Shown here in pieces: positions 2,269 through 51,581 of a DNA stretch of 64,000 bases (position 1 is the first letter of the stretch; each line of letters opens with the position of its first letter). The stretch comes from Macrostomum lignano (lineage: Eukaryota). Made by a program: the position numbers and the translations under genes. Location: contig NIVC01000694.1 of assembly GCA_002269645.1 (NCBI GenBank), positions 378,464-442,463 on the forward strand. The letters are read 5' to 3'. The notes below the pieces were generated by a model. It saw nothing but the letters and a program-made list of their open reading frames with translations, searched no databases and had not been told where the DNA came from.

Positions 2269-2520
2269 CGAAACAGCGCAGAAGGCGAGGTCAACGGCGC
2301 AGAAGGCGAGGTCAACGGCGCAGAAGGCGAGATCAACGGCGCAGGCGAGGTCAACGGCGCAGATTGCGAGGTCAACGGCGCAGGCGAGGTCAACGGCGCA
2401 GATTGCGAGGTCAACGGCGCAGAAGGCGAGGTCAACGGCGCAGAAGGCGAGGTCAACGGCGCAGAAGGCGTGGTCAACGGCGCAGGAGATGGGGTCAACG
2501 GCGCAGGAGGCTGTAGATCT
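2269..2520. repeat. 21-bp minisatellite (ggtcaacggcgcagaaggcga)n, copy A
   Basis: Tandem units are directly visible; the minus strand reads (PLTSPSA)n; the same array occurs at ~32627-32975. Confidence 0.95.
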
Positions 2521-4242
2521 TCCGGTGGTGACTTTTGATTCAGCATCGCAGCGAGTTCCCCTCTGGCATGGCACCCAGCGTTTTGCGGTAGGACAGCCCG
2601 AATCTGCCAGCTGAACGCGGGACTGCCGTGCAGATGCCGCTGGTCTGCGCGCACGATTTGCAGCCCCGCTGCCGAGTGTCCTGAAAATGAAGTGAGGAGG
2701 CGGAATCGCAGCTGACAACATGAAAACAGATGTCAAAAGCATCAGTGCTCAAATAAGGCCATATTCCGTTTAATTAAAGTATTGTACAAATGTTCATTCA
2801 TCAGTCGTGCGATTTGATGTCATTTGAGTCATTTATGTTGATGAGATGATTTAGGGAAATTTCACACTAGAAGTGCGCAGTTTTGCCTGGGCTGGCCTGG
2901 TTCTGTTTGGTTCGAGTTGGGAGGTCTGGCCTGTCCCCGGCTGGTTTGCGTCGCTTTTTGTCCCTCGCTGCAGTCGGTCTCTGTGGCCCAGACACTATTA
3001 TTAGTATTAACAAGATATCAGACCAGATATTATTATTATTATAAGCTCAGAGGCGCTACTCAATCACAGCAGAGAGCTTAGCACAAGTGACCACCTGTGG
3101 TAACTGCATACAAGGTACGGTGTTACGTAAGCCTATTCAGCTCCAACACTGCAATCTGCTTAGGCGAATCTGCTTGACTTGCAAGCTCTGGCGGTGAATG
3201 TGCTGTCCCACTAGGCTTACTTTTTTAGCAGTTTAAGTAATTAAAATGAGGAAGAAAGCGTGCGGTGCGGTGCCTACAATCCTGCACGCTGTTTTGAGTG
3301 AGAACCTGCTTAGCATTGCTTGTGATAGAGATATACGAGTAGAGATACTGACAGTTGCTGCTGACTCGTGTTTTGCTTTCAATTAATTGTAATTGAACTG
3401 AAAGCGTATCAAAAAGCACGCTCTATTTCTACCATATTTACGACCGTAGTAGACCTTAATTTCTGTTGCCTGATATACAAAGACATTGTGGATGCAGCCT
3501 GACTGTGCCGTTTACCAGTCTTAATAACAATTATTTCACTTTACAACTTTATAGTTTAGAGACGTGTTCAGTTTTTTGTGCGTTTATAGTTTAGCGTGTG
3601 TACCTGTACAGATTTGAAGAGTGTGTGCAAATACAGGGTTGAGTGTGTACGTGTACAGGGTTGACTGTGTACACGCACACATCCGGAAGCTGCATCAGCA
3701 TCTACGCGCCGAGGCGAGGAAAGCGTAATGCTTCATTCCGTATGACTGGAGGCGATGGCGCAGAAAGGAGCACTGGAGCCATCACGTCCTCTTTTCTGAT
3801 TGATTTCCTGAGAAGCTCTGCGCATCAGCCTTGACCAAAATCAGCGATGTCAACGGATTAGTTGCCTCTACCACTCTCAGTCCCTGTTGCGCCCCTTCAC
3901 CAGAACCCACTATCAAAGCGCGCTCCCCAGGTTCTAGGTGCGCCCGCTACACAAGAACCAGCATCGACCTGCAAGGAAGTTGCCGATACAGTCGCCGTCG
4001 GGATGTTCAACGGTTTCGTGTGATCCCGTTTTATAGGATGTCGGCCTTCAAACAAAGGCTGGCTCCGTAGCAGCTCTGAGAGACTTGCGCCCGATTGAGC
4101 AGCAGCCGGACTCGGTTGTGAAATTAAGAAGGCCCTAAGACCCTCTGGAACATTTTCTTAACTTGAACTTTGCAAATCCGACATGCCGTGAACATATGGA
4201 AATGCATGTTATTTATCTCAGGACAGCAATCAAAGTCTGCTT

Positions 4243-5004
4243 GTGGCGGCTGCTGCTGTGGCATCCACTGCGTCCGCGGTTTCCGCTGCATGGGCCTTGG
4301 CGGAAATTCGAGCCGACTGGGCCGAAAATCACGCGGCCTTGGCCGAGAATCGTGCCGTCTTGGCCGAAAATCGAGCCGGCTTGGCCGCCATCTTAGATGA
4401 GGTGCGGGCCGACCGGGCCGAAAATCGCGCAGTCTTGGCCGAGAATCGCGCAGCCTTGGCCGAAAATCGCGCAGCCTTGGCCGAAAATCACGCGGCCTTG
4501 GCCGAGAATCGTGCCGTCTTGGCCGAAAATCGAGCCGGCTTGGCCGCCATCTTAGATGAGGTGCGGGCCGACCGGGCCGAAAATCGCGCAGTCTTGGCCG
4601 AGAATCGCGCAGCCTTGGCCGAAAATCGCGCAGCCTTGGCCGAAAATCGAGCCGGCTTGGCCGCCATCTTAGATGAGGTGCGGGCCGACCGGGCCGAAAA
4701 TCGCGCAGTCTTGGCCGAGAATCGCGCAGCCTTGGCCGAAAATCGCGCAGCCTTGGCCGAAAATCGAGCCGGCTTGGCCGCCATCTTAGATGAGGTGCGG
4801 GCCGACCGGGCCGAAAATCGCGCAGCCTTGGCCGAAAATCGCGCAGCCTTGGCCGAAAATCGCGCAGCCTTGGCCGCCATCCAAAATGAGATGCGGGCGA
4901 TGCACCGTGAAATGCGGGCGATGCGCGGCGACATTCTAAACCGCATTAATATGCTACATGCTCAAAGGTTGCGCACGAGGCGCAGAGTCGCCCGCGCTGC
5001 ATGA
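4243..5004 (+). CDS. Minisatellite-encoded Ala/Arg/Glu coiled-coil protein, (AENRAAL)n; probably an internal or terminal exon
   Basis: 253-codon open frame of 7-aa repeats with periodic 11-aa AAILDEVRADR units. It starts at GTG just downstream of a splice-acceptor-like tttatctcag at ~4220. The paralog at 34619-35150 is shorter. Confidence 0.5.
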   Translation: MAAAAVASTASAVSAAWALAEIRADWAENHAALAENRAVLAENRAGLAAILDEVRADRAENRAVLAENRAALAENRAALAENHAALAENRAVLAENRAGLAAILDEVRADRAENRAVLAENRAALAENRAALAENRAGLAAILDEVRADRAENRAVLAENRAALAENRAALAENRAGLAAILDEVRADRAENRAALAENRAALAENRAALAAIQNEMRAMHREMRAMRGDILNRINMLHAQRLRTRRRVARAA

Positions 5005-6629
5005 TGCCGTGTCACGGCTGTGGCAGCAGCTCAGGAGAGAACCTGCTGAAGGCCAAGTGCAGGTGAGAATCGCACAAGGTCAGCTGCTGCTAGTGCAAAT
5101 GGCTCCAACTGTCTCTTGGCGTGTTCAAGAGCCCGAATGTGTAATATGTCATATTATAATGTGCATTATGTACTACATGACCGCCCTATCCACCGCCGTT
5201 AGTTTTATTAATACAGTTTACTCGTATAATAATATTACAAAGCGAGTTCAAGCATCTAGAATTTTATTAATCAGGATTTTTTTAAACTGCACTGCTAGCC
5301 GCAATTAATTTGGAGCTGCTATTCAATAATTATGCCTGCCTGCGGCATGCCGCGCCAGTAGGTGCAGCAACCACGGCAGCTACAGGCTTTTCAGAAGGCG
5401 CTGAGACCCCCATACAGCATGTAATGCATCAGTGTTATTGAAATAGACTGGCTGTGCATCATTTACTATATTAACGTGTTTGCGTGCGTGTGCATGTGCA
5501 GGTTTGCCCTCGGAGCTGCTGTGGAATCAATACGCCTACCAGGGGCTTGCTGAGGACCATTCTCGGCGATGGTTTTACATTCGCCGAGCAAGGTTGGCTA
5601 AGTATTCGGTCGAATTCATCCATTCTTGAACGGAGACTTCTCGATCACCATGCAATCCAACACACCTACAGTGGAATTGTCGATCCTGCCAGCGTTGTCT
5701 GGATGGACGAGCTGGGTCCCCCCAAGGTGTTGACTCTCGCCAGGAAGACCCGAACATGGACCAGGTTCTATAATTCCAAGTCCCGGTTGCGCCCCTTCAC
5801 CAGAACAAATTATCAAAGCGCGCTTCCCAGGTTGCCTTTGTCTTTATCTTTGGAGCTCTCAGCTTTTTTGCTACAAGAACCGGCATCGACCTGCAAGTGC
5901 GACGAAGTTGGCGATACAGTCGCCGAGACCTTTAACGGTTTAGTTGCGTGATCGTGTTTTGACGGATATCGACCCGCAAGTTTAGTTTATTCTGACCGCA
6001 CAAAATCGAAGCTCAATAGAGACGTAGCGCTCGATGGAGCTGGACTCTTGCAGGCTGCCTCAGCAGGTTTCTATTTCTTGCTGACGAGAGCTTTGGGACC
6101 GAGTCGGCGGCAGAGAAGTCCCGCTGCTCCCGCCGCAGCTAAATCTTGAACCAGTCCATTTGTGGACTGCCTGCTGTGTGACTCGGCATACGATCAGACT
6201 GGCTGTTGTGACTTTGAACTCTGCAAGCATGTGTCTGCAGCAATCTCTTTACTCCATTGTTCAGCGTGAGCCCTGTGGTTGATAGGTTAATGAACTCATG
6301 TCTTCCCAAAGTAGCTTGTAGGTAGGCTAGCCAGAAAATTTTAGGAGTCTCCGTTAGAGAGTGCAAAATAATAAGAAATGCTAGGTCTCCATCCCTCGCC
6401 TCGTGCACCTAACCCCGCACGCTTGGCTACTGTGAGTAGATAGTGTCGCAAGTCTTTTTAGGGCTGTCGTAATGCTGGATGTGCCCGATAAAGCACTGCA
6501 GACTAAGCCAACTAATTGAATCATGTTACAATTTCAGAGTTCTTTTTCAAAAATTATTAAAAATAATATATAGTATGTCTATTATTATTTAAGTTAATGA
6601 TCACTATTTGATGAAAGTTATGATGAGGC

Positions 6630-7010
6630 ATAATGGTAGCAAAGTGCAAAGCAAAAAAGTCCGCTGCAGTTTTCCTAGATGCAGAGGCAGCCTTTGATAC
6701 CGCCTGACATGACAAGCTCACTGAGGACAAGCTTACTGACATGTAGCTCAGACACTGCATGCTCACTGATGGCTTTCTATCAAAGCTCACCGAATCCTGA
6801 CAGACTGTCTGAGAGACAGACAGATTCAGGTTCGAGTCCAGGGGTCTCAGCGATTCCCACACCATGCAGTCTGGCGTCTCTCAGGGAGGCATCCTGAGCC
6901 CTCTCCTGCACCGCTTCTACGTCAGCTCAATGCCAACTTAACTTGCGCAGTTAATTTGCAGACGACACGGCCGTCTGGGCCTCAGCTGACACCTTTGTAG
7001 GGCTCCGAAC
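6630..7010 (+). pseudogene. Degenerate non-LTR retrotransposon reverse transcriptase
   Basis: Fragmented RT motifs: AAVFLDAEAAFDTA*HDKL (~6662), SGVSQGGILSPLL (~6870) and FADDTAVW (~6956); there are stops and frameshifts. Confidence 0.75.
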
Positions 7011-7799
7011 ATTCCTTTCAGAGCTATCTCAGACGTTTCAGACCATCAGACTGAATGCTGGGAAGAGCAAAGCAATCGCTTTCAACTACAAACCCACCAG
7101 GCGCATGGACTTGCGACCCAAACAATATCTGGGAGACGGACGGAGGTTCCGTACAGCCAGGAGATAAAATTTGCCCAAGCCTCTGTCTGAGCAAACAACG
7201 CAAGACACCATGACAGATACCAGCAGAGCCATTGTAATGCCGCTATACAGAATTGCTAAAATGACAAAGCTGAGTAGTGCTCACTATCCTCAGTGTACAC
7301 AGCCTACGGAGAAAACATCAAATCAAACTGCAAGGATTCCCAATCCAAGGTAGGCTGACGGGCAGTCTCCCAGACCATAGAAAACTGAGCATGCTGCCTG
7401 AGCCAGAGATCGGTTCATCAGCAAAAGGGACCGGATTCCATGACCTGTGATCTCCCTGCGCACTTTTACACTCTTTGTAAGAGTCTTACAAATATTGCTT
7501 AAAACTTTTTACACCCCTTCTATACTACTTATACAGTTGTATTCAAATATGCGGTATTGCATTTCATTTCATATTTTACTTAATAGCCTATTTTTTACTC
7601 TTCATTACCTTTTTATAAGAATCCCTTCTTTGTGCAGATTTCCCTGTTCCCTTCTATCCCTTCCATATTTTTATTCCCAAATGTGTGCGAAATTACTGCT
7701 GCTAACTATTAAAAAATAGTTTTATTTAATTTAATTTCATGTTTTTCGATCTAAATAAAAAATTAAATAAGCAGCAGAGCTCCTCAGAACTGATCCACG

Positions 7800-7900
7800 C
7801 CGGTTTTTACGGCACTTCGCTTGAACAAAAAAGTTTTTATCAGGCAATTTAGGGTGTCTTTTCTGGAGATTTCTGCTCATCAGCCAGTGGCCAAACTAAA
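7800..7900 (-). pseudogene. Possible hAT (Buster/Charlie-like) transposase remnant
   Basis: Minus-strand SRNLQKRHPKLPDKNF resembles the RHL..KHP.L.DK..YF motif of Buster-type transposases; the fragment is very short. A paralog lies at ~38010-38110. Confidence 0.3.
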
Positions 7901-8858
7901 GTCCGGACACGCCAGCCGCAATTTTTAGAAATTATGTTTGAAAATGAACAATGAAATTTTGGGAATTTGGCTTATCACGTGTAAATGTTCTTGGTCTAAA
8001 CGAGCGCCATTTAAATGAAATGAATTTTCACAACAGAACTCACCATTTTCCTGCAGGAACAGCCAGCCAGGTAATTGGATTCCCGAGCACTCTGCCTCAG
8101 GCTACTTTGGTGCTTTTGTCTGACTTGTCGAATCGATCTTGCACGCTGACCTCAGCATTTTACAACTTACATCGTGGTTTGTGGTGCCACATTGAATAAT
8201 CCGTTCCAGAACACATAGTATGCAAAAACTGTTTCCGATACTAGACTAGAAATCACAGTCAGAGCCTGGGCCCTCCTCCTGACCGCCCTCCTTATAGTCA
8301 GCAGTTGATTATGTCAAAGATACAGAATTGGGGGAGGCGGCAATGTACTCATACCAGCGTACATTCCAGAGATAAGCGCAAGATCGTTCCACGGCGGCTA
8401 CCGCAAAGGGGTGTAGAAATGCTAGAAAAATCGATATTTCCTTATACTGACGATAAGCAGGTCGCGCACACCGTGCACACGGCTACATGGAGACACCAAA
8501 TGTTAACACTTGAACAGCTTTAACGAATCTGACCAATCACGAGAGGCGGCCGTTGTAAAAGCTTAGGAGTTTATTTTATAAATATCATGGGTGACACGAG
8601 GCTAAACTAGACATTATATTTGAGTTTGCGTATGTACTTCGGCTTACTAGTAAAAGTAAAATGTAATGAATAATTCATGTGCAACCGTACGAGTATAAGC
8701 CAGTCGAAAGTAATGAGTCATCAGTCTTATAGTCCATAAACTTATTATTTTTAAATGATTATTATTAAATGAAGCAACAGGTGCAGCCCTAGTGCCTTAG
8801 AGAGACAAACTATCCAGTTCTCTTCTTACGAGACGTCGTCTCCTCCCCAGTCATCAGC

Positions 8859-10147
8859 TCATCTGAAGCTATACAGCACTGACTGCAGCGCTTGAATGTC
8901 CTCCTCCAGCCTTACGATTATGTATTTCACCTTGTCGAGAATGTACTTTATTTCGTGTGCCATAGCAGACAACTTTCTGCACCGATCTCGTATGTCGGCG
9001 ACCCTCCGAAGTTTTGCATTAGCGTCCCTGATCGCTGTCGCCATGGATAAACTTGCAGTTGCATGGAGGGTTGCGAGCCCGACACCTCCAGCAAGCCAGG
9101 CTGACAGCTCCAGGCCGACAGATACTAAAATAACTGGATGAGCCAGTCAGGCATATATACGAGCGTACTTAGTGAAACTGCTTTCTACTTTCAGTTCAGT
9201 AGCAAAGAAGAATACATAAGCAATTTTATAAAATAAAGGCAACAGCTGAAATTACTTTGATAAGTTCAGAAGCCCAAGCTTGCAGGCGTAAACAACTTGC
9301 TATGAATGGTTGGTTCAGCAATCATGTACATTAGCCAGTCTACTAAAATGTACACGGCAGCCTTAGGCTGGAATTCCGATAAAGGCAATCAAATTTGGTT
9401 GGGCGGGGGAGTGTGGAAAGGCGCGGTTGGAGGGTTTAATTAAGCTGGAGGGTAAGAGCCAATAAATGAGCCTTGACTTTTAAAAATACATTTAAAAGCT
9501 TCTGTTAAACTTACTACTGAACTGAAAGTAGCGTACATTTACTGAGTGGCCCATCTACGTTCTAGTATCTTTATCCGTGCCTTGTGTCCTTGTTCCGCGC
9601 TCTGGCCGCTTCAACTTCTCCGCCTTCTGTGTGAGCTTCTCGTGGAGCATTTTTAAGACCCGATGAGACTTAGCTCGTATTCAGTCCATCAGTGAATCTA
9701 TTGAGTCGCTTGCAGCACTCCCTGAGACTTTCTATTGTATGCTGCATTATTTGACGGAATTCTTCTGTTGCTTCATGAACATGCTCTTGCGCAGCTTGCT
9801 TTTTGCTAGACTATTGTATGGCAAAAAATTGCTAGTCTTTAGCAATTCCAGTAGTGGCTTGCAGCTTTTATTATTTTGTTGTCAAAAGCGCTTCATTATT
9901 ATTGCCTTGATTCAAAATTACAGTCATTTGAAAACATACACATGTACTCTTGATAGTATGCTTGTGCATAGTATGCATGAGGGATTCGGGTTATTACGAG
10001 CTGTAGTATGGGTGCACGGATTTTTGCCCCTTGTTGCTGCATATTTGCAATGCAGACTACATAATTGCTGACCATGACAGGTAGATAAACTTTAAAGCCA
10101 AGGTGGGCTTGTTCGTATCGTAATGCAGAATATGCAAGCTCAGCCAT
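8859..10147 (-). pseudogene. Damaged member of the coiled-coil/hydrophobic-hairpin gene family, interrupted by a MITE-like insertion
   Basis: Starts MAELAY like 52973; 9570-9800 and 8859-9120 align to 39052-39570 (LTQKAE..RTRTQG, MATAIRDANA..RLEEDIQALQSVLYSFR); it has stops and a ~450-bp insertion in the hairpin-coding region. Confidence 0.8.
9121..9569. mobile_element. MITE-like insertion with imperfect TIRs
   Basis: Ends gatacta...tagtatc; internal ctactttcagttcagtag (~9186) is mirrored by ctactgaactgaaagtag (~9513); absent from the paralog at ~39345; no clear TSD. Confidence 0.6.
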
Positions 10148-10831
10148 GGGTCTCTACCAGTTGCTTGGCGAAAGCACAGACAAGCATAGGAATAAATATT
10201 TCAACCCGTTGAGTGAGTTGAGTGAGGCTTGAACACAATGGAGTTCGCGTACTAAATATTTATTCGCATGGTTGGCCAGTCATTCAAGCCTTGAATTGTC
10301 TCGAGGCTAGGCGCAGCGTCTGAGCAGCAGAGATATTTAGAGACAAAGAAGAAAGTTACAAAAAGTTGAGCAGCAGTAAGTGTGCTCAGGGTGTACTTAA
10401 TCAAAACTGAACTTCCATTTTGCTTCGGCTGGGCCGTTGAATACAGGCTTTCACGTACAGAGTTGCAAGCTACTCCGATGCACACGGTCTCGAACTTCTC
10501 CCTGTCTAAGCGCTCAGTGCACAATAAGTTTATTTATTCGTCTGAGATTAAAAAGACAGAGGGTGAGCAATGCGCCTTGTCTCACTTCCATTGGTCGGAT
10601 CCGGGGCTTTTGCACAGGAGCTCCGCGCCTGCCTGGCAAAATGGAGCTTGGGGAGCTTATGGGTTCGCTGCGTGCGGCTTCTGGGGGCAGGGCCATAGGT
10701 AAAGTTTGTTTTATTTTTTTTTATTTTATTGCCAATGCATTTCGACCCTTATAGGTCATCTTCAGGGTGGTAATGAAAATTAATCAAAGCAGTTAAACAA
10801 ATACTTATCAAAATTCAACGGGAGCACCCCA

Positions 10832-11110
10832 ACTGCCAGCCGGAAAACTGCCAGCCGACAATTGCCAGCCGACAACTGCCAGCCGACAACTGCCAGTCGA
10901 CAACTGCCAACCGACAACTGCCAGTCGACAACTGCCAGCCGACAACTGCCAGCCGACAATTGCCAGCCGAGAAAACTGCCAGCCGGAAAACTGCCAGCCG
11001 ACAACTGCCAGCCGAGAAAACTGCCAGCCGGAAAACTGCCAGCCGACAACTGCCAGCCGAGAAAACTGCCAGCCGAGAAAACTGCCAGCCGACAACTGCC
11101 AGCCGACAAG
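10832..11110. repeat. 14-15-bp tandem array (actgccagccgaca / actgccagccggaaa)
   Basis: About 20 directly visible units. Confidence 0.95.
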
Positions 11111-11625
11111 TTCTAGCAAATTGAGTCTACTGTAGCCTACTTATTAGCTAAGTATGAGTAAAAAGCACGAAACTGTTTGGCTAGCAAAAGGCTTGTGGGT
11201 AGCCTTAAATGTCGCCCTTCCCTTCCCTAAAATTTTCAGATTTCCATTAGAAGTATATATGTGAAGGAGAAGGCATTCTGTAATGCCTATTGTAAATATT
11301 TCTGTATTGAAAGTTCATTTACTTTATTATTTAATTTGCGATTGCGATTTCTATATGACGCAATCCTAGATAAGTCTATTAAATTACTTTACTTAAATAA
11401 AGCTTTCAAAGAAAGAGTAAAGGCTACCTAAAATACGAAATTTGAATGCCTTCTCCTTCACATATATACTTCTAATGGAAATCTGAAAATTTTAGGGAAG
11501 GGAAGGGCGACATTTAAGGCTACCCACAAGCCTTTTGCTAGCCAAACAGTTTCGTGCTTTTTACTCATACTTAGCTAATAAGTAGGCTACAGTAGATTCA
11601 ATTAGCTAGAACTTGTCGGCTGGCA
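11097..11625. mobile_element. Foldback/MITE-like element with 182-bp inverted arms
   Basis: 11097-11278 is the reverse complement of 11444-11625 (two mismatches seen), with a ~165-bp AT-rich spacer; absent from copy B. Confidence 0.8.
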
Positions 11626-11665
11626 TAATGTTACGGGACATATTGTATATACATAAATATTCCAC

Positions 11666-12730
11666 CTATTTGATGCCGTGAATCCTCATCTTGTTCTTCA
11701 ACTCGGCGATCTCTGCCTGCTGCAGAGCGATGCGGTCGTCCTTCTCCAGGTCTTTGCGAAAGAATTCCAGTGCGGTCTGCAGCGCTTCGATCGCCTTCTT
11801 GTCCAGCTGGATGGTTTCGGCTTTGTCTCCGCTGCTCTTCAGCTGCTTGGCGATGACTTCCAGTTTGTTTGAGTTGACACTGAAGTCTCTGGCCAGCTCA
11901 TGCATCGCCTTCACATTCAACACTTTTTCCTTGGCCTCCTCAGTGATCGCCCCGGCTTCTTTAACGGCGCAGGCGGCTTGAACATGGCAGGCCTTCATGT
12001 TGACTGCGGTGTTCTTAGTCACTACACCGGCTCCAACGCCGCAGGCTGTGCCAGCAACGGTGCCAGCGGCAATCCAGGCGGCGCCGCCGGTGAAGAAGCC
12101 GAGGGCCGTGAGCCCGATCGCTCCGATCGCCAGTCCAGCAATTTTTTTTGCTCCCCGTTTTTTCGTTCTGTTCACTTCTTCATCCAGCTCAGCCGCTTTT
12201 TTTTCCAGCTCAGCCGCTTTTTCTTTCAGCTCAGTAGCTTCTTCATCCAGCACAGCCGCTTTCTTCTCCAGCTCATCTGCTTTCTTCTTCAGCTCGTCAG
12301 TGAGTTTCATGGCGATTTGCTGTGCTTTGAACAAGAGGCCGATGAAGTCATCGAATGCGGCTGAGAAGTCGCTCGCCATTCTATGAGTAGAGATGAGCAT
12401 CTCACAGAACTCCCTGACTACTTCTGGGGGAATGTTGATCGTGATTTTTGTTCGCACGAATCTCTCGAACACTTGGATTTCTTTCCCGAAGTTCTGGAGC
12501 CAGACTTCCAGCTTGGATCCGGAGCTCCACACTTTTTCTAGTTCCAGCTTCAGTTCCTTCAGCAGTGGCTCATCAGCCAGGTCGAGTTGCTCCACCTCGC
12601 TTGCGTGCTTCTTCGTTTGCTCGATAACTCTGTACAGCTCGGTTCTATCGTCTTGAAGCGACTTCATCGTCTTGACAGCCTTGCTGATGCCGCTCAGGAC
12701 GTCGCCAATCTCTCCCAGCTTCTCAGCCAT
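11666..12730 (-). CDS. 354-aa intronless helical protein with a long coiled coil and a central hydrophobic hairpin (ClyA/Hbl-like or ApoL-like topology; family unassigned)
   Basis: Intact ATG-to-stop ORF; heptad-rich segments flank GLAIGAIGLTALGFFTGGAAWIAAGTVAGTACGVGAGVV; the close paralog 49589-50506 conserves the frame, and all indels are multiples of 7 aa. Confidence 0.85.
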   Translation of the reverse strand: MAEKLGEIGDVLSGISKAVKTMKSLQDDRTELYRVIEQTKKHASEVEQLDLADEPLLKELKLELEKVWSSGSKLEVWLQNFGKEIQVFERFVRTKITINIPPEVVREFCEMLISTHRMASDFSAAFDDFIGLLFKAQQIAMKLTDELKKKADELEKKAAVLDEEATELKEKAAELEKKAAELDEEVNRTKKRGAKKIAGLAIGAIGLTALGFFTGGAAWIAAGTVAGTACGVGAGVVTKNTAVNMKACHVQAACAVKEAGAITEEAKEKVLNVKAMHELARDFSVNSNKLEVIAKQLKSSGDKAETIQLDKKAIEALQTALEFFRKDLEKDDRIALQQAEIAELKNKMRIHGIK

Positions 12731-13316
12731 GACTCTTCGAATAGTTTATGTTTATTGCTTTTGTTTGGAAGTGCTTCACGATTGTCTTTTCTTAAGCTAT
12801 ACGCGTTTTTTAGCGTATGCAAATTTCGGTTTCTGAAAAAACGTATTTAAGACTATGGAGTGAGCAGCTCGCGCTTGATTTTCAAAAAAAAAGTTTTGGC
12901 ACCCAAATAAATAGAAAATGAGAATGAGCTGAAACACGTGCTCACGTGGTTGTTAGTACCTTGTTAAAGATACAGCCATTTTCGCTTTACTATTTAATGA
13001 ATTATCTCTTGCATTTTACCCTGTACTTAAGCATATTCGGCATAGTGCAAGTCAGCCCTGCCCTGATACCCTTATTCGCGAGCATCTCACAATGGCGTAC
13101 GATGGTTCATAATTGCAATGAATTATGCGCGTGAAAAGAACGTGCTTTGCCTTACCTTGAGATTCTCACAGTTGCAGGTGTGCATATTAAGAAACCGAAC
13201 TTCCCTTTCTAAAAGCTCAATGTATAGCTCGGTGCCGCATCACCGCGGTCTGCAAGTCTACAAATCTGCTATGACCAGCTTTGCAGAATCTTGCAATTGA
13301 AATAGTAGTTAATGAC

Positions 13317-13384
<68 letters not shown>

Positions 13385-13416
13385 GTAGTAGTAGTATAGT
13401 AGTAGTTGTAGTAGTA

Positions 13417-13491
<75 letters not shown>

Positions 13492-13492
13492 C

Positions 13493-13574
<82 letters not shown>
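13317..13574. repeat. (TAG)n microsatellite
   Basis: Direct; an equivalent tract lies at 51113-51580 in copy B. Confidence 0.98.
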
Positions 13575-16816: not shown

Positions 16817-17297
16817 TGTCAAAGTTATTATACAAACCATATATTCCCACAAAAGCAATGATTATACAACCCACACACATTACGAATATGAATATTCCCA
16901 CACAAAAAGCAATGATTATACAGCCCACACAAAAGAGTTTTTTTAGAAATTGTCTTAATCATTTTCACTCGACACACATTGTGGGGAGCTGCTGCAGTTT
17001 GGCCTTGTCGCTGCTGTAGATTAGCTTAATTCGCTTGTTCTGCTCCTTGATCACAGCAGCCCAGGCAGCAAAGGCCGGCTCGTGGGGCCCAATCTGATGG
17101 GCCGGGGTCTTGAAAAGCTGTTCATCAGTCAGGCCGGCAGCCCAGCTCTCGAGTTCAGTCGAGTCCGGGGGATACGAGTGCCACCACTTGTAGCTGCTGC
17201 CGTCAATCGTTGAAAGCTTCTTCACCTGCGGCTGCATTTCAATCGGTGGCGGGGTGTTGGCACTGCGGCGGCGGCTGCCCTCGCCGTCACCATCATT

Positions 17298-20200
17298 CTT
17301 CTTCTTCTTCTTCCGACACCCCACAACGCTGCCCTGGCAGCTGGGGGGAGGGCGCTCACAGGCGCCCCAACCTGCGCTGCGCAGGAGCAGGAGCACGTCC
17401 ACTGGATGGTCAAGGATGTCTCCTGTTCGGAGTCTGGCGCGGAGCGCATCCCCGCGTGGGCATTGCCGCAGGATGTGGTCCTCCGTGTCCGGAAGTTCAC
17501 AATCCCGGCACCGCGGGTCGTCGGTGATGCCAAGGCAGTGACGCGTGGCCTGTGCCAGGCTGGAGCATCCGGCCCGCAGTTGATTGATGGCCACCGCCTC
17601 GCTCCGGCTGAGATTGTTCGGGGGTCGCTTCCATGATGGACCAACGAGTTGACGGTCCAGCGCAACGCGCGCTCTTCGGATTGCTGCTTTGGCCGCCTGA
17701 AGCGATATTGGCCCATTCTGTTGGTCATTATTTCTGGCGCTGTTGGCTAGCCTGTCGGCCCGCTCATTGCCGCCGATGCCGCAGTGCGCGGGCACCCAGA
17801 CGAGTTCGCAGGTGCGACTGGACGCGGCCAGCAGGGCGAGCAGGTCCCAGCAGCTACGGCCATTGCCGGTGTCTTGCTGACCAGGACCGGCCTCGAGCGC
17901 ACTCAGGGCTGACCGGGAGTCAGTATGGAGGCGAATAGTGGTGCCGTGACAAGCTGGCAGCTCATTGACGTATCTGAGGCCGGCTAGGATGGCCACCATT
18001 TCGGCCTGGAAGCTGCTGGCGATACGGCCGGCCGGGGCTGCGACGGTGCTGCACCAAAGGCGCGTGGTGGCCACAGCCGCGCCCAACGCGTTGTTGATAC
18101 CACCACTGGCCGATCCATCGGTCCATAGCTCAATATTCACCGGCGCCATGGCCGCCAGTAGGTGCTGAGCCCGTTCCTTCTTAATGCTGGCGGGGAGCCA
18201 TCGGTTGCAGGTCTCTCCCAACTCAAGGTGGAAGCTGACGGCTCCTCCGCCGTCGGCGAGGATCATCCGGTTAACCCACGGCTGCACCAGATCCCTGGCC
18301 AAGTCATCGAGGCCGGGGCACAGTTCCTGGCTGAAGCGGCGCCAGCATCCATGGTGGGGCCGCTGGTACTCCACCTTCAGCAGGGCGCGGCCGCCTTTGG
18401 CGGGGTCCGTTTGCCTGGCGTTGGTGGCATCCTCCGCCTGCAGTCGCCTCTCGCTTTCAAAGGCTCGGTTGCGGAGGCGGGGCTCGCTCTGCCTCGAGGC
18501 CGAGGTTGTCGCCGGTATGTCTGGGGCGAGTCTGAGAATACGTTCTCTGAGACAGGCGGCACGTTCCAGGGCTATGTTGTTGAAAGGTGGCAGGTCGGCG
18601 ACGGCGAGGAGGCTGGTCACGCGAGTGGGTAGGAGACAGCCCGTAATGATTCGGGCGCAGGCGTTCTGCTGCTGCTCAATCAGCATCTTGGTGCTCGGAG
18701 CAGCGCTGGCCGCCCAGATCCCACATCCGTACTCGGCCACAGCTCTGACCGTCGTCATATAGGCGGTCCTGCGCACGGTCTGCGACGCGCCGGCGCGTCT
18801 AGACGCCAGGTTGCCGAGCGCTCTCCGGCGCTGAGTCATCCGACGACGCACAGAGTTCACATGGGGCAGAAACGTCAGCTGGTCGTCCAGGGTGAGCCCC
18901 AGGAAAGTCGGGTTTTTGCAGTAGCTGAGTGTCTCACCAGCCAGGGTGAGGGAGACTGTGAGCTTGCCATTGACCTCCGCTGGTGATAGCGTGAATGTGG
19001 TGTAACAGCATTTGTTGGTGCTAAGCATCACTTTCCATTCCTGGCACCAGGCCGCGACCGCGTCCAAGGCAGGCTGGAGCATGGCCCCACAACCTTTGAG
19101 GGTGCGGTGAGTGGCGAGGAGCGCCGAGTCGTCGGCAAAGAGGCTCGTGCCGCAGTCCGGTGCCGCTCTCGCGATGACTGTCGGGAGGTCATTCACATAG
19201 ATGCACCAGAGCATAGGAGCTAGGACGGAGCCCTGCGGCAGGCCCTCGCCGAACGCGCGCAGCCGGCTGTAGGTGCCTTCGTAGCGAACGCATGCGTGCC
19301 GGTCTGAGAGGAAGGCGTGGGTCCAGGCAATGGCATGCGCGTCTATCTCAATACGATCCATTTTAACCGTAAGGCCGTCTCGCCAGACTTTGTCATAGGC
19401 CGCCTTGAAGTCCATCTGGGCCAGGATGCTTCGGTGCGGTGGCTGATGTTCGAGTCCGTCGAAAACATCCTGACAGACACGGGCTAATTGTTCCTCCGTG
19501 CTACGTCCTTTTCGGAAGCCAGCTTGCGTTGCACTTAGAAGGCCCTTGGATTCCAGATCGTAGGTAAGCCGTGCCAGGACCATGCGCTCAGCGCATTTCG
19601 CTATGCAACTGGTAAGCGACACCGGCCTGTACGACTCCGGGACAGACGCGTCCTTATTTTTCTTGAGGACAGGCACGATGATAGCCCTGCGCCAGGCGCG
19701 AGGGATTTGTTTGGTCCTCCACGTCCGGTTGATGAGGTCCAGGAGCCGCTGGTCGGTCTTGGGGGGCAGTCTCTTGAGCATGTCGTTGCAGACGCCGTCG
19801 GGCCCGGCAGCTTTTCGGCTTTTGAGTTTCTTAAGAGCCATGCGGAGCTCGCACATGGAGAACAAGGAAGGTGGTTGGTGGGCCTTCCTGCGTGCTTCAA
19901 TGGCTTGGTTCCTGATAGCGCTGTCACTCTTTCGTCTTGGTACCCGCGACACGGCCGCGTACATTTGGCAGAAAACGACCGCTTTCTCCTTACGGGTCCT
20001 CGCCGGTCTCAGCTTAGCACCATTCTTGTCGCGTCTGATGAGATCAACGTTGCCTCGGGCAGGCGCGGTGTCGCCACGGCTGGCTCGAAGAAGGCCAAAC
20101 AGGTCGCTGTCCGCTGTAAGGTTGCTGGCGCGCTCTTCAAGAAAGCGCTGGCGCTCGCGTCTGATGGTGGCGCCGGCCTGGTGCCTTGCCCGGTTGTAGG

Positions 20201-21771
20201 CCGTCAGATTGGCAGTAGTCGGATCGTGTTCAGCGCGCTCTCTGGCCTCCACGCAGGCGGCTCTAGCCGAATCGCACTCGGCGTTCCAAAAGGGGGTGCG
20301 CCTGCAGGCGGGGCTACCTCTGGGGATGGCTATGGCTGCCGCCGCGAGGATGTCGGCGCAGAGAGCCTCATGTTCGATGTCAGCAGAGGGCCAGGCTTGA
20401 GGTCCTTGGATCGTTTCCAGGTGCGCCCTGAAGCAGCCCCAGTCAGCTTTACGGAAGCTCCAGCGAGTGCAGCCATGCTGGGGGGGGGGGCGTTTGTCGG
20501 CGGCGAGGGGGAATGAGATGGGCAGATGATCGCTGCCGATGTCTTTCTCAGTTCTCCAGCCATCGCTGATATAGTTCGCGAGCTGTCCGCCACTGATCGT
20601 GATGTCCGGCGCACTGCGCGAGCCAGTTGCTGGGCTAGTGCGCGTGTGCTGGCCATTGTTGCAGATATGGAGGCCTTTGTTGGAACACCATTCTTCAATG
20701 GCGTGGCCCCTCGCATCCTCTTCCATCCACCTGTCCCAGCAGCCGTGCGCGTTGAAGTCTCCTCCAAGCACCACATTGCCGCGAGACGGTAAGCTGTAGA
20801 AGTCAGGGGCCCAGGCTTCTTGGCGTTGCGAGCTAGTTGGGGGCGCGTAGACGTTGACAAGAGTGATGGAGGCCTGGCCCTTCGCGAAGATGGTGATGGA
20901 CGCCGTATCAAGCTTATCGTCCAGTCTTTGGTGGTCTCGCTCTTCGCTATACCTGACGTCGGAGCGCACGAGGATGATCACTCCCCCCCTGCTGGTATGT
21001 TTTTTTTGCCTTTTTGGTTTTTTTCCCGGCTAGGGAGGTGGCGCTCCCGCACGCCGGGGCTCCCGTGTCTTCAGTGGGCCGCTCAGGTATGTTTGGCACA
21101 GCAGTTCCTGGTTCAGGCCAGGTTTTGTCTCGCTCGGTGCACGCGGAGCGGCGGCCCCGGCAGCCTGTGCACCACGTTTGGCGGTCTTCTGGGTATCTCT
21201 TGCGGCAGGTGGGTCGATGGATGCGGCGGTTGTCCGTGGCACGAGCCGTCGGGCCCCTGCTGCCACGGCCATTTTCATCAGTTTGAGAGGCCGCGGGGGC
21301 ACCGCTAGCCCCGTCCGCCGCTGCCGCCGCAATGTCAGTTTCCTCTGGAGCGTATGGGATGCCGTCCGTCCGAGCAGCCACGCAGTAGCCGCTTGGAGGG
21401 TGGTACTCTTCGCCTTCCATGAGCTTAGTCTCCTGTAGCATGACGACCGCCGGGCGGTTTTTGGCGAGCCAGTTGGCCAGCTCCGTGGAGCGCGATTTCA
21501 GCCCGTTGACATTTAGCTGAAGTGCGCGGAGCTCTTGGTCCAGCTCTGCTTCTTCCTGCCCGCGGTGTCTGCCGCGGCGCTTGCGTCCCGCCCGGCGTTG
21601 CTTACGAGAGCCGGTCACGGTGGCGGCGCTGTTGCCGCCTCGCAGCCTTAGGATCCGCTCCAGGTTGCCGTCCTCTTTAACTGCGCAGGTTTGTCGGTAG
21701 GGGAAAACGTTAGTCACTCCTGGGGGGACTGCTTCGGTCTTCGGCAGTACGGACCCCAGGTCCAGGGGCAC
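17298..21771 (-). CDS. APE endonuclease-reverse transcriptase-RNase H polyprotein (one frameshift in a G7 run near 20985)
   Basis: APE: LQLNVNGL, MLQETKL, GGDFNAH, GSDHLP. RT: KAAGPDG, YRPVSL, QAGFR, DFKAAYD, PQGSVL, FADD. RNase H: WTDGS, SFQAEMVA, HTDSRS, WVPAHCGIGGNERAD. Zn motif: CRDC..EDHILRQCP. Confidence 0.92.
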
Positions 21772-26390: not shown

Positions 26391-29300
26391 CTTGACATAG
26401 ATGTTGAAGTAAAGGGAGGAAACTGGAAACAGGAAACTGAATTTACTGGAACTGGTTATTTCTGTACTCTGCGCGGACCTACACACCAATGATTTTGTTA
26501 CGGCCAAGCTGACTGCCGATAATATGCTACTCACTATTAACGTGCCGCCCGTCCGCCGCAGCCGCTTCACAGCAGAGTTGGTATTTAAACATACGCTCGT
26601 ATCAACAAGGTTCTGCAGTCGGACTCCAGTGTCTTGGGCAACAACTACCTCTTCCTGCCTAGGTTGTTTTTGAACCAAATCACAAAGGAACGTTACTGAC
26701 GAAACAATTAAGAATGTAGAATGCAAAGCCTATAATTGTCAGAAAACAAGAAAACCTAGAATACTCATGGTAAGCAGTGCTTACCATATCCGGCAAGAAC
26801 GGATACTACCAATTTAGCCATAGAATTTAATTTACTCTGGTCGGCAGAAAGTTGAGTTGGGCCATGGTAAGCACTGCTTACCATCAGTCTTCTCGTGGTT
26901 TTAAATTGTTTTTGCTCAAGGCCTGGGTCCCGCGGGGCGGCTGTGGCAGCCTAGATGCGGCGGAGCGCCACATCCAGGCACGCCATTCAATGGGGCGCAA
27001 CTACGTGGTCATCGCCAACAGCGATAAGCGGTGCCTCATCCGGGCGCTGGTGGTGGCCAAGGCCTTTGCCGATCTGGAGGCCAAGGCCATCACCAAGCAG
27101 ACTTGGCGGACCATCAAAGCCGACTCCCCACTGCAGACGAAGCTGACTGGGGAACTACAAATTGCCGCCAATCCGTATTCGGTGAGTAAAAATTATCTTG
27201 CACATTTTAATTTGCATTTTTATTAATATACAAATGTTATAGTCTTTATCAACCATTGCACAGGACGGGCCTTTCGGGGTTGACGTGCTCCCCCAACTGC
27301 TCGCGGTCCTGAACGCCCAGTCGCCAGGCCGGGATTTCGGCGTTCGTGTGTACAGCGCGGAGGAGGGCAATACATGTGTGTACACCCTGCCTGGCAGCAC
27401 AGTGCTCAATCTACACCTAATTGGCGAGCACTTTAACGCGGTGTGCAAGGTGCCGCCATTTTTCGGTGCCCGTTACTATTGTGACCGCTGCCAGCAGCCG
27501 TACGACTGCAACTCTGCAGGGCACAAGTGCGCCAACACCTGCCCTCAATGCAAAGTGCCCGGCGCCAATTGCAAGAGCCTGCGGTGCGACTACAAACGAT
27601 GCCCAGACTGCGGATTGAAATGTTACAATCCGCAGTGTTTTGAGAACCACCGCCAGAAAAACCGGGCCGGCAGGTCTCGCTGTAGCTCCACCCGCGTCTG
27701 CCCCAAATGCGGGTATTTGGAGGAGTTAAAAGCCGGCCAGAAGGAGCCGGATCACAAGTGTGGGCATGTCAAGTGCCCACTGTGTAAACAGTATGACGAG
27801 GCCGGCTCGCATTTGTGCTTCGTCAAGGCTCCCAAAGTGAAAGCATCGACTATGCCGTACGTGTTCTACGATACGGAAACATACACGGATGATGAGAAGC
27901 AGCATCACGTGCACCTGGTGACTGCCGTCACGTGCTGCGAGACCTGCTCCGGCCGGGCATTTCCACGCGAGACTTGCAGCCTCTGCAATGGCCTGCATAG
28001 CACTGCCAACTGTCTGACTGGCCGCGATCTGGGGGAGGAATTCTCCAATTGCGTCAGCCACTCAGACTGCGCCTGCCAAATGGCTGACTTTGTGGCTGTG
28101 GGCTCGGCCTCGCTGAATCCTTTTTTCGCCTGGCTAAGCACCACATTCCGAGGCGGCGCCATTGTTGTCGCGCATAATGCATCAGGCTATGATGCGTTTC
28201 TACTGCTTGGCGCTCTGCTCAACGGCCTGGCCAAGAAGCGGCCCCAAGTGTTGTTCCAGGGCAGCCGGCTAATGAGCATGACGGTTGACAAATTGGTGTT
28301 TAAAGATTCTCTAAACTTTATACCAATCCCGCTTGCGCAATTCCCTAAAGCTCTGGGGCTCGAGGACACAAAGCTGGCCAAGGGGACCTTTCCCCACCAG
28401 TTCAACAAGCCGGCTCATTGGAACTACGTTGGCCCCTACCCGACTATTGATTATTATGGCGGCAAGGCAAACAAGGACTACGGCTCCATCTGTGCTTGGC
28501 TGGCCTCGTGACAGGGCGAGTTGTTCAACTTTAATCAGGAATATCTCGATTATTGTTTGAGCGACACGGTGCTGCTTCGCGAGGGCTGCATCAAGTACAG
28601 GGCAATAATTGGTGAAATTTGCGACGGCCTGGAACCGTTTGTACAGGCCAATACGATTGCCAGTTTGGCAATGGCTGTTTTCACCACCCGGTTTATGGAG
28701 CCCAACTCGGTCGGCGTGATTGCCCGGCAGGCTGACCAGCAGCCGTTCAAGGCGCGCAAGTGGCTGGCCTATTTGAATGCCACCGAATTTGGCGGGCGAC
28801 TGCGCACCTGCGACTCGACTGACGGCGGCGAGGCTGTCATTCTCGGCCGCAAGGTGGACGGCTTCGATGAGGCTAGCAACACTGTTTTGCAGTTTCATGG
28901 CTGTTTCTACCATGGCTGCGAGCAGTGTATGCCCGATCAGGATGCTGTCCACCCACTCAAGCGGCAGCCTCTGAGCCATATAAGCCACGAGACTGAGTGG
29001 TTCACTCGCGAGTTGGAGCGGCACAATTACAGTGTTCGTGTCATTTGGGAGCACGAATACACTGTATTGGCAACGCAGGCAGATTTTATCGCCGCAACTG
29101 CCCATCTGCGCGCTCCGCTCAAGATGGAGGATGCGCTCTACGGCGGCCGCGTAGAGTGTTTTATCCCGCATGCTGTGGCCAGCGAGACTGAGACTCTCAA
29201 AATCGGGATGTGGTGAGTAGTGATACTACTAATGTAGTAGAATATTTTGCAAAAAATACAGTTTATGAAAAATAATGCTTTATTTCAACTGGCAAGTCTC

Positions 29301-32626: not shown

Positions 32627-32975
32627 GGTCAACGGCGCAGAAGTTGGGGTCAACGGCGTAGGAGGCGAGGTCAACGGCGTAGGAGACGAGGTCAACGGCG
32701 CTGAAGGCGAGGTCAACAGCGCAGAAGGCGAGGTCAACGGCACAGAAGGCGAGGTCAACAGCGCAGAAGGCGAGGTCAACAGCGCAGAAGGCGAGGTCAA
32801 CGGCGCAGAAGGCGAGGTCAGCAGCGCAGAAGGCGAGTTCAACGGCGCAGAAGGCGAGGTCAACGGCGCAGGAGGCGAGTTCAACGGCGCAGGAGACGGG
32901 GTCAACGGCGCAGGAGATGGGGTCAACGGCGCAAGAGATGGGGTCAACGGCGCAGGAGATGGGGTCAACGGCGTA
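32627..32975. repeat. 21-bp minisatellite, copy B (longer than copy A)
   Basis: Same unit as 2269-2520. Confidence 0.95.
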
Positions 32976-34618: not shown

Positions 34619-35150
34619 GTGGCGGCTGCTGCTGTGGCATCCGCTGCGTCCGCGGTTTCCGCTGCATGGGCCTTGGCGGAAATTCGCGCAGACCGGGCCG
34701 AAAATCGCGCCGATCGAGCCGAGAATCGCGCCGCCTTGGCCGAGAATCGCACCGGCCTGGCCGCCATTTTAGATGAGCTGCGGGCGATGCGCGGCGAAAT
34801 GCGGGCAATGCGCGACGAAATGCGAGCGATGCGCGGCGAAATTCTGGACCGCATTGATATGGTACGTGCTTTGATATGGCCGAGAATCGCGTGACCTTGG
34901 GTACCATTCTAATGCGGTACGAAGACGACATGCGGGCGAGTCGAGATGATGCCTTAGTCGCATATCCTAAATGATAAGCAGGCCGACCAAGCCGAGAATC
35001 GCGCAGCCTTGGCCGCCATCCAAAATGAGATGCAGGCCGACCGGGCCGAGAATCGCGCAGCCTTGGCCACCATCCAAAATGAGATGCGGGCGATGCACCA
35101 TGAAATGCGGGCGATGCGCGGCGATATTCTAAACATGTATTATACGGCAT
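34619..35150 (+). pseudogene. Shorter, rearranged paralog of the AENRAAL coiled-coil ORF
   Basis: Same N-terminal VAAAAVASAASAVSAAWALAEI and same acceptor context; fewer repeats; stop at 34894; further repeat units at 34990-35130. Confidence 0.7.
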
Positions 35151-36859: not shown

Positions 36860-37215
36860 GGTAGCAAAGTGCAAAGCAAAAAAGTCCGCTGCAGTTTTCC
36901 TAGATGCAGAGGCAGCCTTTGATACCGCCTGACATGACAAGCTCACTGAGGACAAGCTTACTGACAAGCTTACTGACATGTAGCTCAGACACTGCATGCT
37001 CACTGATGGCTTTCTATCAATGCTCATGCTCACCCGAATTCTGTCAGAGTCAGACTATCTGAGAGATAGACAGATTCAGGCTCGGGTCCAGGTTCGGCAT
37101 CCTGAGCCCTCTCCTGCACCTCTTCTACGCCAGCTCAATGCCGACTCCCGACAATCCGAGCGTCAAGCGCAGTTAATTCGCAGACGACACGGCCGTCTGG
37201 GCCTCAGCTGACACC
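36860..37215 (+). pseudogene. Degenerate non-LTR RT, duplicate of 6630-7010
   Basis: Same AAVFLDAEAAFD and ADDTAVW remnants. Confidence 0.7.
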
Positions 37216-48044: not shown

Positions 48045-48242
48045 CATACTCTTGACATATACGCGCATGTGCATAGTGTGCATGAGGGATTCAGGTAATT
48101 GGTACGGGTGCGTACGGATTTTTGCTCCTTGTTTCTGCGTATTTGCTATGCAGACTAATTGCTGACCATGACAGCTAACTTAAATTTGACTTGCAAGATA
48201 GGTCTATTTGTTTCACAATGCAGAATATACAAGCTCAGCCAT
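48045..48242 (-). pseudogene. 5' remnant of a MAELAY-type family member
   Basis: ATG GCT GAG CTT GTA TAT TCT GCA TTG TGA at 48242; colinear with 9940-10147 and with the start of 52973. Confidence 0.7.

Positions 48243-51112: not shown

Positions 51113-51581
<469 letters not shown>

Follow-up and report, generated by a model that had tools for sequence, protein, structure and literature searches.

Why does one member of a flatworm gene family encode two additional blocks of 28 amino acids (aa), one on each side of a hydrophobic hairpin, when a close paralog encodes neither? The question is raised by a 64,000-nucleotide (nt) stretch of Macrostomum lignano DNA (contig NIVC01000694.1, positions 378,464 to 442,463 of the forward strand, GenBank assembly GCA_002269645.1), which is referred to here as the window and whose own numbering is used below. 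The window contains four members of a flatworm-restricted, tandemly and segmentally duplicated family of intronless genes encoding proteins of ~300 aa that have no signal peptide. The original prediction, made from the letters of the window, proposed that the two blocks arose in separate events that were balanced under selection, extending an antiparallel stalk with the hairpin at its tip. The best overall explanation in our analysis, with a rough probability of 0.55, is that a ClyA-type neck was lengthened in this gene as a compensated 28 + 28 pair.

Two Insertions in the Long Paralog

The features on which the comparison depends are as follows. ORF denotes an open reading frame, AF2 an AlphaFold2 model, and gaps are those of the MAFFT alignment of the two translated ORFs.

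11666-12730, minus strand: long paralog, a single-exon intact ORF of 354 codons (354 aa), from the ORF list and AF2 model.
49589-50506, minus strand: short paralog, 305 aa, with the same predicted fold and without the neck inserts, from the AF2 model.
12179-12262, minus strand: insert 1 (aa 157-184), KAAVLDE EATELKE KAAELEK KAAELDE, four extra heptads in helix 3, from an alignment gap.
12017-12142, minus strand: hydrophobic hairpin (aa 197-238), IAGLAIGAIGLTALGFFTGGAAWIAAGTVAGTACGVGAGVVT, 42 aa, Gly/Ala-rich, a putative membrane-inserting head found by hydropathy scan.
11924-12007, minus strand: insert 2 (aa 242-269), AVNMKACHVQAACAVKEAGAITEEAKEK, four extra heptads at the start of helix 4, from an alignment gap.
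49631-49651, minus strand: DEQRARM (aa 286-292), one heptad by which the C-terminal helix of the short paralog exceeds that of the long one, from an alignment gap.

The two proteins are 84% identical over aligned columns and are separated by exactly three gaps. This bears out the length accounting with which the question began (354 - 305 = 28 + 28 - 7), and the coordinates first proposed for the blocks were right within 1 to 3 nt. Insert 2 can be placed equally well at aa 245-272 (11915-11998), as it was in the original prediction, because its flanks, AVN and VLN, are similar.

To establish which copy had changed, a family alignment of 13 sequences was used, comprising the long and short paralogs, two more paralogs from the window, and nine M. 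lignano homologs. Both 28-aa blocks are present in the long paralog only and the 11 other members have neither, so this alignment identifies both blocks as insertions gained by the long copy. The heptad DEQRARM is missing from the long paralog and from the family members P0004 and P0005. The hairpin has a TGG turn in mid-segment (aa 214-216), and both of its arms have 19-residue Kyte-Doolittle means of 1.5-1.8. No motif of the family is better conserved than GFFTGG.

Predicted Structures of the Long and Short Proteins

Structure prediction had been suggested as a check on the stalk proposal, and it was carried out for both proteins with AF2, from input alignments of 5 sequences for the long protein and 14 for the short. 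The long model has a mean predicted local distance difference test score (pLDDT) of 72.9 and a predicted template modeling score (pTM) of 0.57; the values for the short model are 70.0 and 0.56. Each model consists of five helices, and the hairpin connects the third to the fourth.

Helix 1: long 2-48; short 2-47.
Helix 2: long 54-95; short 55-95.
Helix 3: long 102-194; short 102-162.
Hairpin: long, low confidence with no helix called; short, two short helices, 176-186 and 189-197.
Helix 4: long 235-305; short 206-248.
Helix 5: long 311-350; short 255-301.

In the long model helix 3 is extended by 32 residues and helix 4 by 28, and helix 5 is shortened by 7. Both inserts are predicted to be uninterrupted helix, continuous with the helices beside the hairpin, with pLDDT values of ~76-90 over aa 151-190, which take in insert 1, and ~72-85 for insert 2. 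The heptad phase through insert 1 is constant over aa 138-194, with Ala occupying the a positions and Leu the d positions, and insert 2 has small or hydrophobic residues at a and d. If the chain folds back at the TGG turn, each residue i is placed opposite residue 431-i, which puts 23 of the 28 residues of either insert across from the other. These results provide moderate support, at the level of a model, for antiparallel pairing of helices 3 and 4 as a stalk. Thus, the proposed stalk is plausible, given the helical inserts, the unbroken register of insert 1, the overlap of mirror positions, and the structural matches, described next, to ClyA-type proteins, whose corresponding two helices run antiparallel and bear the hydrophobic head.

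Comparison of the models with the PDB in Foldseek yielded AhlB (pore and pre-pore), AhlC, SmhB, SmhA, XaxB, MakA, and HblL1 as the best natural matches to the long model. For the short model the best matches were ClyA/HlyE monomers (4phq, 4pho, and 1qoy), followed by AhlB, SmhB, and HblL1. The short model and the ClyA monomers align collinearly over about 300 columns of 305 residues, with template modeling (TM) scores of 0.43-0.46 and root mean square deviations of 7-9 Å. The convergence of two independent models on the ClyA superfamily, despite weak E-values, favors a ClyA-type fold, and the models thus lend moderate support to the possibility that the proteins adopt the fold of the ClyA/HlyE alpha-pore-forming toxins.

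Origin of the Two Insertions

The inserts, which had been described as unrelated in sequence, do appear to have come by different routes, insert 1 being an expanded 21-nt repeat and insert 2 being non-repetitive. The repeat was located with Tandem Repeats Finder.

12183-12295, minus strand: 21-nt coding tandem array that includes insert 1, 5.4 copies.

The short paralog has 2.0 copies of the 21-nt unit, at 50033-50074. Insert 1 corresponds to four additional units, each of which codes for an A-x-x-L-x-x-x heptad, and the repeated codon unit in the codon listing is AAAGCGGCTGAGCTGGA..AA. This correspondence between the DNA arrays identifies insert 1 as a coding tandem-repeat expansion. Growth of a 21-nt array means that the length of insert 1 was quantised by the mutational mechanism, and not necessarily by selection. 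Further arrays with a 21-nt period and up to 17 copies are found in ORFs of the duplicated block (2272-2511, 4294-4898, and 32627-32981), and heptad-sized coding minisatellites seem to be common in the region.

Neither strand of either gene, nor the rest of the window, yielded a DNA source for insert 2. A copy from elsewhere in the window was rejected when blastn-short yielded only chance matches of 10-16 nt. A recent tandem duplication, or an inverted copy of insert 1 or of some other part of the gene, was rejected on the basis of ungapped DNA scans of both genes and both strands, in which the maximum was 39/84 identities; shuffled controls had a mean of 36.7 and a maximum of 41 of 84. Even the adjacent 84 nt match insert 2 at only 33/84 positions, the level expected by chance. 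At the protein level, the best ungapped match to insert 2 in the whole protein is the 28 residues that follow it (BLOSUM62 score 19, 7/28 identical). The probability of this match relative to shuffles is 4e-4 for that single pre-specified comparison and 0.39 as the maximum over positions. Self-comparison at shifts of 7, 14, 21, and 35 residues gave scores of 4, 4, -12, and -18. Insert 2 may therefore be read from this protein-level echo as an old, strongly diverged tandem duplication of the four heptads that follow it.

Retained introns were also considered as a source of the inserts and were rejected. The 84-nt blocks are both GC-rich, keep the reading frame, and follow the heptad pattern, and no GT...AG pair removes exactly the block that is missing from the short copy. 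In addition, the annotation of the M. lignano homolog P0001 has a single exon.

In the explanation that we favor, helices 1, 2, and 5 and the proximal halves of helices 3 and 4 would form a tail bundle, the distal parts of helices 3 and 4 would run antiparallel as a neck, and the 42-residue hydrophobic helical hairpin would be the tip for membrane insertion. The 354-aa copy would have a neck longer by four heptads per strand, or roughly 4 nm (28 residues at ~0.15 nm). Helix 3 could have been extended through slippage or unequal exchange in the 21-nt coding minisatellite, which would add whole heptads only, and helix 4 through the 84-nt insertion of insert 2, whether or not this was the old duplication suggested above. 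The helices must keep register for the hairpin to close, and thus a long extension would be best tolerated when the return strand is lengthened as well. The matched 28 + 28 gains would then represent a compensated pair.

Length Balance and the History of the Gene Pair

Whether equal lengths require an explanation depends on how often the family changes in length by whole heptads. Among indels of at least 4 aa in helical segments of the family, the lengths that are multiples of seven are 7, 7, 14, 28, 28, 28, 7, 14, 14, and 21 aa, and the other lengths are 4, 4, 8, 25, and 17 aa. Indels of 7, 7, 14, and 28 aa occur in the loop between helices 1 and 2, and indels of 7, 14, 21, and >50 aa in the C-terminal tail. 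For example, a 28-aa insert falls exactly at the helix 1-2 loop in P0008 (PAA71743.1), and P0044, P0006, and P0043 (M. lignano PAA89764.1 and relatives) have many tandem 14-aa units (EKDDRIAQLETEGV) in the C-terminal helix. Therefore, length changes by heptad multiples take place at several sites of the fold, and chance equality of two of them would not be rare. We estimate a probability of about 0.2-0.3 for two equal lengths by chance, and of about 0.05 for equal length together with opposite position, the latter being an estimate rather than a computed value. Overall, the balance goes beyond chance to a moderate degree only.

Homologs were also surveyed for correlated indels. Helix 3 is extended in 2 of the 13 sequences, the long paralog (+28 before and +28 after the hairpin) and P0005 (+25, repeat-like, and +10). 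Helix 3 contains a conserved Gln and helix 4 a conserved Ala-Met; measured from the Gln up to the FFTGG turn, and onward from that turn up to the Ala-Met, the distances are 47 and 31 residues in the short paralog, 72 and 41 in P0005, and 75 and 59 in the long paralog. The possibility that the pre-hairpin insert of P0005 is also a 21-nt array was rejected, as Tandem Repeats Finder sees none there; the sole repeat that it finds in P0005 is a 9-nt unit in the polar post-hairpin insert. At least 10 extra post-hairpin residues are present in 2/2 sequences with a helix 3 extension versus 0/11 without one (Fisher P = 0.013, a value that ignores phylogeny). These sequence comparisons suggest coupling between the two sides of the hairpin but do not amount to proof of length tuning. 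No member of the 13 has a long post-hairpin insert alone.

The long and short copies differ by a synonymous divergence (dS) of 0.18, and the ratio of nonsynonymous to synonymous divergence (dN/dS) is 0.44, which is below 1 (binomial P = 9e-4), although it reaches 0.75 in the C-terminal third. These codon comparisons indicate purifying selection on the pair.

Several of these observations weigh against selection for balance, and hence against a compensated neck. The case for selection on length is weakened by the repeat origin of insert 1, the length of which could have been set by mutation. Heptad-multiple indels are common in the family, which gives equal lengths an appreciable probability of arising by chance. 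P0005 retains an intact ORF with 25 helical-type residues added before the hairpin and 10 Pro/Ser/Asn-rich residues added after it, and thus exact balance is not obligatory. The long paralog is the one balanced case. Furthermore, the elevated divergence between the inserts that is described below, which extends to synonymous sites, allows for one conversion event instead of two insertions. Thus, of the original proposal that two separate events were balanced, the difference in route stands, whereas balancing by selection is inferred and, like length tuning, not established. A difference in reach between the paralogs, in the manner of a molecular ruler, is speculative.

One alternative, which is fairly unlikely, is coincidence. 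The coiled-coil sequence of the family may be DNA with a 21-nt period that freely gains and loses whole heptads, in which case two independent and nearly neutral 28-aa gains could be equal by chance, with any imbalance looped out. The frequency of heptad-multiple indels at several sites, the plain repeat expansion in insert 1, the other 21-nt arrays within the window, and the intact ORF of P0005 all argue for coincidence. However, insert 2 is non-repetitive, lies opposite insert 1, and is not at a common indel site. Coincidence also does not account readily for the lack of members with a long post-hairpin insert but no pre-hairpin one, for the hydrophobic a/d stripe that is kept in both inserts, or for the dN/dS of the pair. 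It is possible, if on the unlikely side, that the entire module comprising both inserts and the hairpin between them (about 12264-11914) came over in one event, by gene conversion or recombination, from a more divergent long-necked paralog, so that any balancing would have taken place earlier, in the donor lineage. The DNA between the inserts (12191-11992) is 82-84% identical in the two copies versus 91-98% in the coding flanks. Mismatches number 30/177 between the inserts versus 41/634 in the flanks (Fisher P = 6e-5), a region ~2.6 times more diverged, and dS is about 0.30 there versus 0.13 elsewhere (P = 0.035). This raised divergence is what suggests that the module may have come in one gene-conversion event. 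The echo of insert 2, which is found in the protein only, is too diverged for an event younger than the split of the pair, and the locus shows what looks like an exchange of cassettes between haplotypes, P0005 standing where the window has the short gene. However, the donor paralog was not found, the counts are small, and substitution rates are known to rise close to indels, which could explain the divergence. A mosaic phylogeny was considered as proof of gene conversion. The short protein is ~89% identical to aa 1037-1315 of the M. lignano UniRef entry A0A1I8I0H8, and site patterns with this sequence and three outgroups group the short paralog with A0A1I8I0H8 against the long paralog in all three regions; conversion is thus not demonstrated by this route.

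A further possibility, that the long copy is decaying or no longer functional and tolerates in-frame inserts for want of selection, is highly unlikely. The duplicate is recent, its C-terminal third has the elevated dN/dS noted above, and an exact look-up of the long protein in public assemblies found no identical protein on record. However, the 354-codon ORF has stayed intact despite two in-frame 84-nt gains, overall dN/dS remains well below 1, and both inserts are heptad-striped and confidently helical in the model.

Family Assignment

The compensated-neck explanation presumes a ClyA-type fold, and the sequence searches bear on this presumption. Three Pfam models were tested, PF06109 (HlyE), PF05791 (Bacillus_HBL), and PF05461 (ApoL). 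An exhaustive search of 1.84 billion representative proteins with a hidden Markov model (HMM) of the family gave 41 matches. The 8 of these with E < 1e-10 are all M. lignano proteins, mostly labelled hypothetical or uncharacterised, and two are clusters that include fused gene models named for other domains. At E = 9.7e-4, the family HMM weakly picks up P0041, an authentic member of the HlyE family (PF06109, 61.9 bits). Of the 33 weak matches, 32 were scanned, and these include nine Pfam ApoL proteins and three SseC/SctE translocon proteins. Profile alignments with hhalign had the following probabilities.

HlyE-family P0041: 86%, E 4.8e-6, 178 columns, with the hairpin against the head.
ApoL-like rotifer protein P0018: 94.6%, 123 columns.
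Type III secretion system translocon SctE protein P0033: 94.8%, 74 columns.

Word-indexed protein searches were less productive, with one match for the full long protein, two for the 13-sequence alignment, and none for the N-terminal 145 aa. Low-complexity coiled-coil words appear to swamp the candidate lists of such searches; the exhaustive HMM search recovered the family. A literature search on hemolysin E in flatworms or pore-forming proteins of M. lignano found nothing relevant.

A ClyA-type assignment has to be set against a number of results. No family member matches a Pfam model convincingly. Neither the long nor the short protein has an HlyE or HBL Pfam match at E <= 1, and for 14 family members searched against Pfam at E <= 10, there was no HlyE or HBL among the 25 of 126 matched families listed. 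A sequence search of the PDB gave no significant match, HblL1 alone appearing at E 3.2. The Foldseek E-values are weak (3e-3 to 8e-3, with TM about 0.45), the AF2 confidence is moderate (pLDDT 70-73) and comes from shallow alignments, and the hairpin of the long model has low confidence, with pLDDT below 50. In addition, the hhalign scores for the ApoL-like and SctE proteins exceed that for HlyE, and therefore the sequence does not single out ClyA.

It is unlikely, but worth considering, that the family is instead ApoL-like, or an independent membrane protein built of a coiled coil and a glycine-zipper hairpin, and that its likeness to ClyA is generic to long helical bundles. In that case the hairpin could be a permanent two-pass membrane anchor. 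The nine ApoL and three SseC/SctE proteins among the distant matches and the score of rotifer P0018 are consistent with this possibility, as are the de novo helical bundles and the chemoreceptor and SMC coiled coils that also occur in the Foldseek lists. To our knowledge, there is no full-length ApoL structure in the PDB. There was none among the Foldseek matches listed, and thus the fold comparison was probably unable to find ApoL, which keeps an ApoL affinity a live alternative. However, the Pfam ApoL model matches neither the long nor the short protein nor any other family member. The ApoL and SctE alignments are short and confined to the coil-hairpin-coil module, in contrast to the 178 columns aligned with HlyE and the nearly full-length structural alignment with ClyA, and ClyA is fitted both by the number of helices and by a head that follows helix 3 and precedes helix 4. 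The predicted fold of the whole protein favors ClyA.

Genomic Setting of the Family

The two other family members in the window, identified with tblastn and alignments, both lack the inserts.

52014-52973, minus strand: third paralog, 319 aa, 39-41% identical to the long and short proteins.
39141-39842, minus strand: fourth paralog, ~233 aa from a Met at 39842, 26-28% identical.

In the third paralog the second arm of the hairpin is 5 residues longer, and an acidic/Gly insert of 17 aa precedes the final helix. The fourth ends soon after the hairpin and is probably a truncated copy adjoining a retrotransposon insertion. A segmental duplication (2272-13574 versus 32736-39245 plus 48065-51371 by tblastn) encompasses both the long and the short gene. 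Past the stop codon of the long gene (11712-10717), the similarity between the two loci falls to about 40%.

A second M. lignano locus (L002, contig NIVC01001366.1) is 99% identical to ~9 kb of the window (60083-51311), and by eye the third paralog is ~98% identical to an ORF at L002:7419-8375. The match breaks at a (TAG)n microsatellite at ~51311, where P0005 and ~900 bp of unrelated upstream DNA replace the short gene. Beyond P0005, similarity resumes at 77-90% in a ~600-bp repeat that lies downstream of each gene. The gene thus resembles a replaceable cassette between the microsatellite and the conserved repeat, unless one of the assemblies is a chimera joined at the microsatellite.

The (TAG)n microsatellites lie ~600 bp upstream of the genes, at 51113-51581 for the short gene (157 copies) and 13317-13574 for the long gene (87 copies), and also at L002:9050-9086. 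Copies of the ~600-bp repeat are found at 10123-10699, 48212-48850, and 52943-53570 in the window and at L002:11689-12257 and 6822-7449, and are 77-81% identical. Copies follow the long gene, the short gene, and P0005, and another directly precedes the third paralog, overlapping its first 30 nt. The repeat could be an untranslated-region or promoter module or a mobile element. A 14/45-nt minisatellite of ~19 copies (10830-11109) is in the ~1-kb stretch downstream of the stop codon of the long gene.

Mobile elements are present around the genes. Between the fourth paralog and the short gene is a Ty3/Gypsy-type pol ORF (40572-44471, minus strand, 1299 aa, with reverse transcriptase, RNase H, and integrase), which is missing from the matching L002 stretch and is therefore probably a recent insertion. 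A long interspersed nuclear element (LINE)-type ORF (16965-20981, minus strand, 1338 aa, with endonuclease, reverse transcriptase, and RNase H) lies in a GC-rich block of up to 62% GC, and an IS1595/ISXO2-like DDE transposase ORF is at 62394-63170 (minus strand). A weak match to type-B DNA polymerase (organellar/viral; E 6e-5, below the Pfam cut-off) at 27285-28511 (plus strand) is possibly a Polinton/Maverick-like fragment. Elsewhere in M. lignano, contig NIVC01000020.1 (L001) has three family members in tandem within 8.4 kb (2448-3401, 4988-5878, and 10001-10846). The middle member, of 296 aa, is missing from the called gene set, and P0003 is ~52 kb away on the same contig.

Implications

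A broader interpretation, which we offer as distinctly doubtful, is that these genes are unrecognised Macrostomum membrane-permeabilising effectors with a ClyA fold, possibly ApoL-related, in a hypervariable cassette locus in which neck length is set in compensated heptad steps. Haplotypes that are otherwise 99% identical would then carry alternative genes at the same position, and the distance at which the head is positioned would differ between paralogs, perhaps so that different target envelopes could be crossed or mixed pores formed like those of the tripartite bacterial toxins. If the fold is correct, the family would represent a second, independent animal lineage with an expanded ClyA-type family, after the hemolysin E-like genes of Drosophila, with flatworm sequences so diverged that domain models miss them.

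The long and short proteins, 84% identical, constitute a natural minimal pair for evaluating how neck length affects folding, membrane insertion, and pore geometry. Their matched gains would, moreover, be an example of stepwise structural change driven by a heptad-coding minisatellite, with compensation then required in the partner helix. If coincidence or a single conversion tract is the correct explanation, what was found is no more than the usual repeat instability of a coiled-coil gene.

Comparison with Known Systems

ClyA (HlyE/SheA) of the Enterobacteriaceae (PF06109; structures 1qoy, 4pho, and 4phq, and pore 2wcd) is close in size to the short paralog, 303 versus 305 aa. It likewise has five long helices in the same order, a hydrophobic head between helices 3 and 4, and no signal peptide. 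However, the head of ClyA is a short beta-tongue, whereas the flatworm head is a 42-aa Gly/Ala-rich double hydrophobic segment. The flatworm genes are also eukaryotic, intronless, and tandemly duplicated, and their capacity for pore formation is putative.

The head-neck-tail design of the flatworm proteins is common to AhlB, SmhB, XaxB/YaxB, and NheB/HblL1 (6grj, 6h2f, 7a0g, 6gy7, and 7nmq). In the AhlB pore, antiparallel alpha3 and alpha4 helices of about 140 Å link a five-helix tail to a hydrophobic head, the two 39-Å arms of which span the bilayer (PMC6602965). This is the geometry that the original prediction had proposed. The long two-arm hydrophobic head of such B components is nearer to the flatworm hairpin than is the ClyA tongue, but their similarity to the long paralog is low (~10% sequence identity, TM about 0.43, E about 1e-2). 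AhlB-type toxins act with operon-encoded partner subunits, whereas co-assembly of the clustered flatworm paralogs would be speculative.

The multi-copy, fast-evolving ApoL proteins of animals (PF05461) share with the flatworm family a helix, a Gly-rich hydrophobic hairpin, and another helix, followed by a C-terminal heptad-repeat helix, and rotifer and other ApoL-like proteins were matched by the family HMM. However, the likeness is confined to ~120 columns around the hairpin, and in the ApoL-like P0018 the hairpin is near the N-terminus, so that the order of domains around it differs from that of the flatworm family.

The metazoan precedent for a ClyA-like family is found in Drosophila ananassae and its relatives, which have large, clustered, fast-evolving families of hemolysin E-like (hl) genes with a ClyA fold that serve as anti-parasitoid immune effectors (PMC11731912). 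The Drosophila hl genes have a Pfam/CDD HlyE domain, introns, often signal peptides, and a documented history of horizontal transfer from bacteria (PMC11731912), features that set them apart from the flatworm family.

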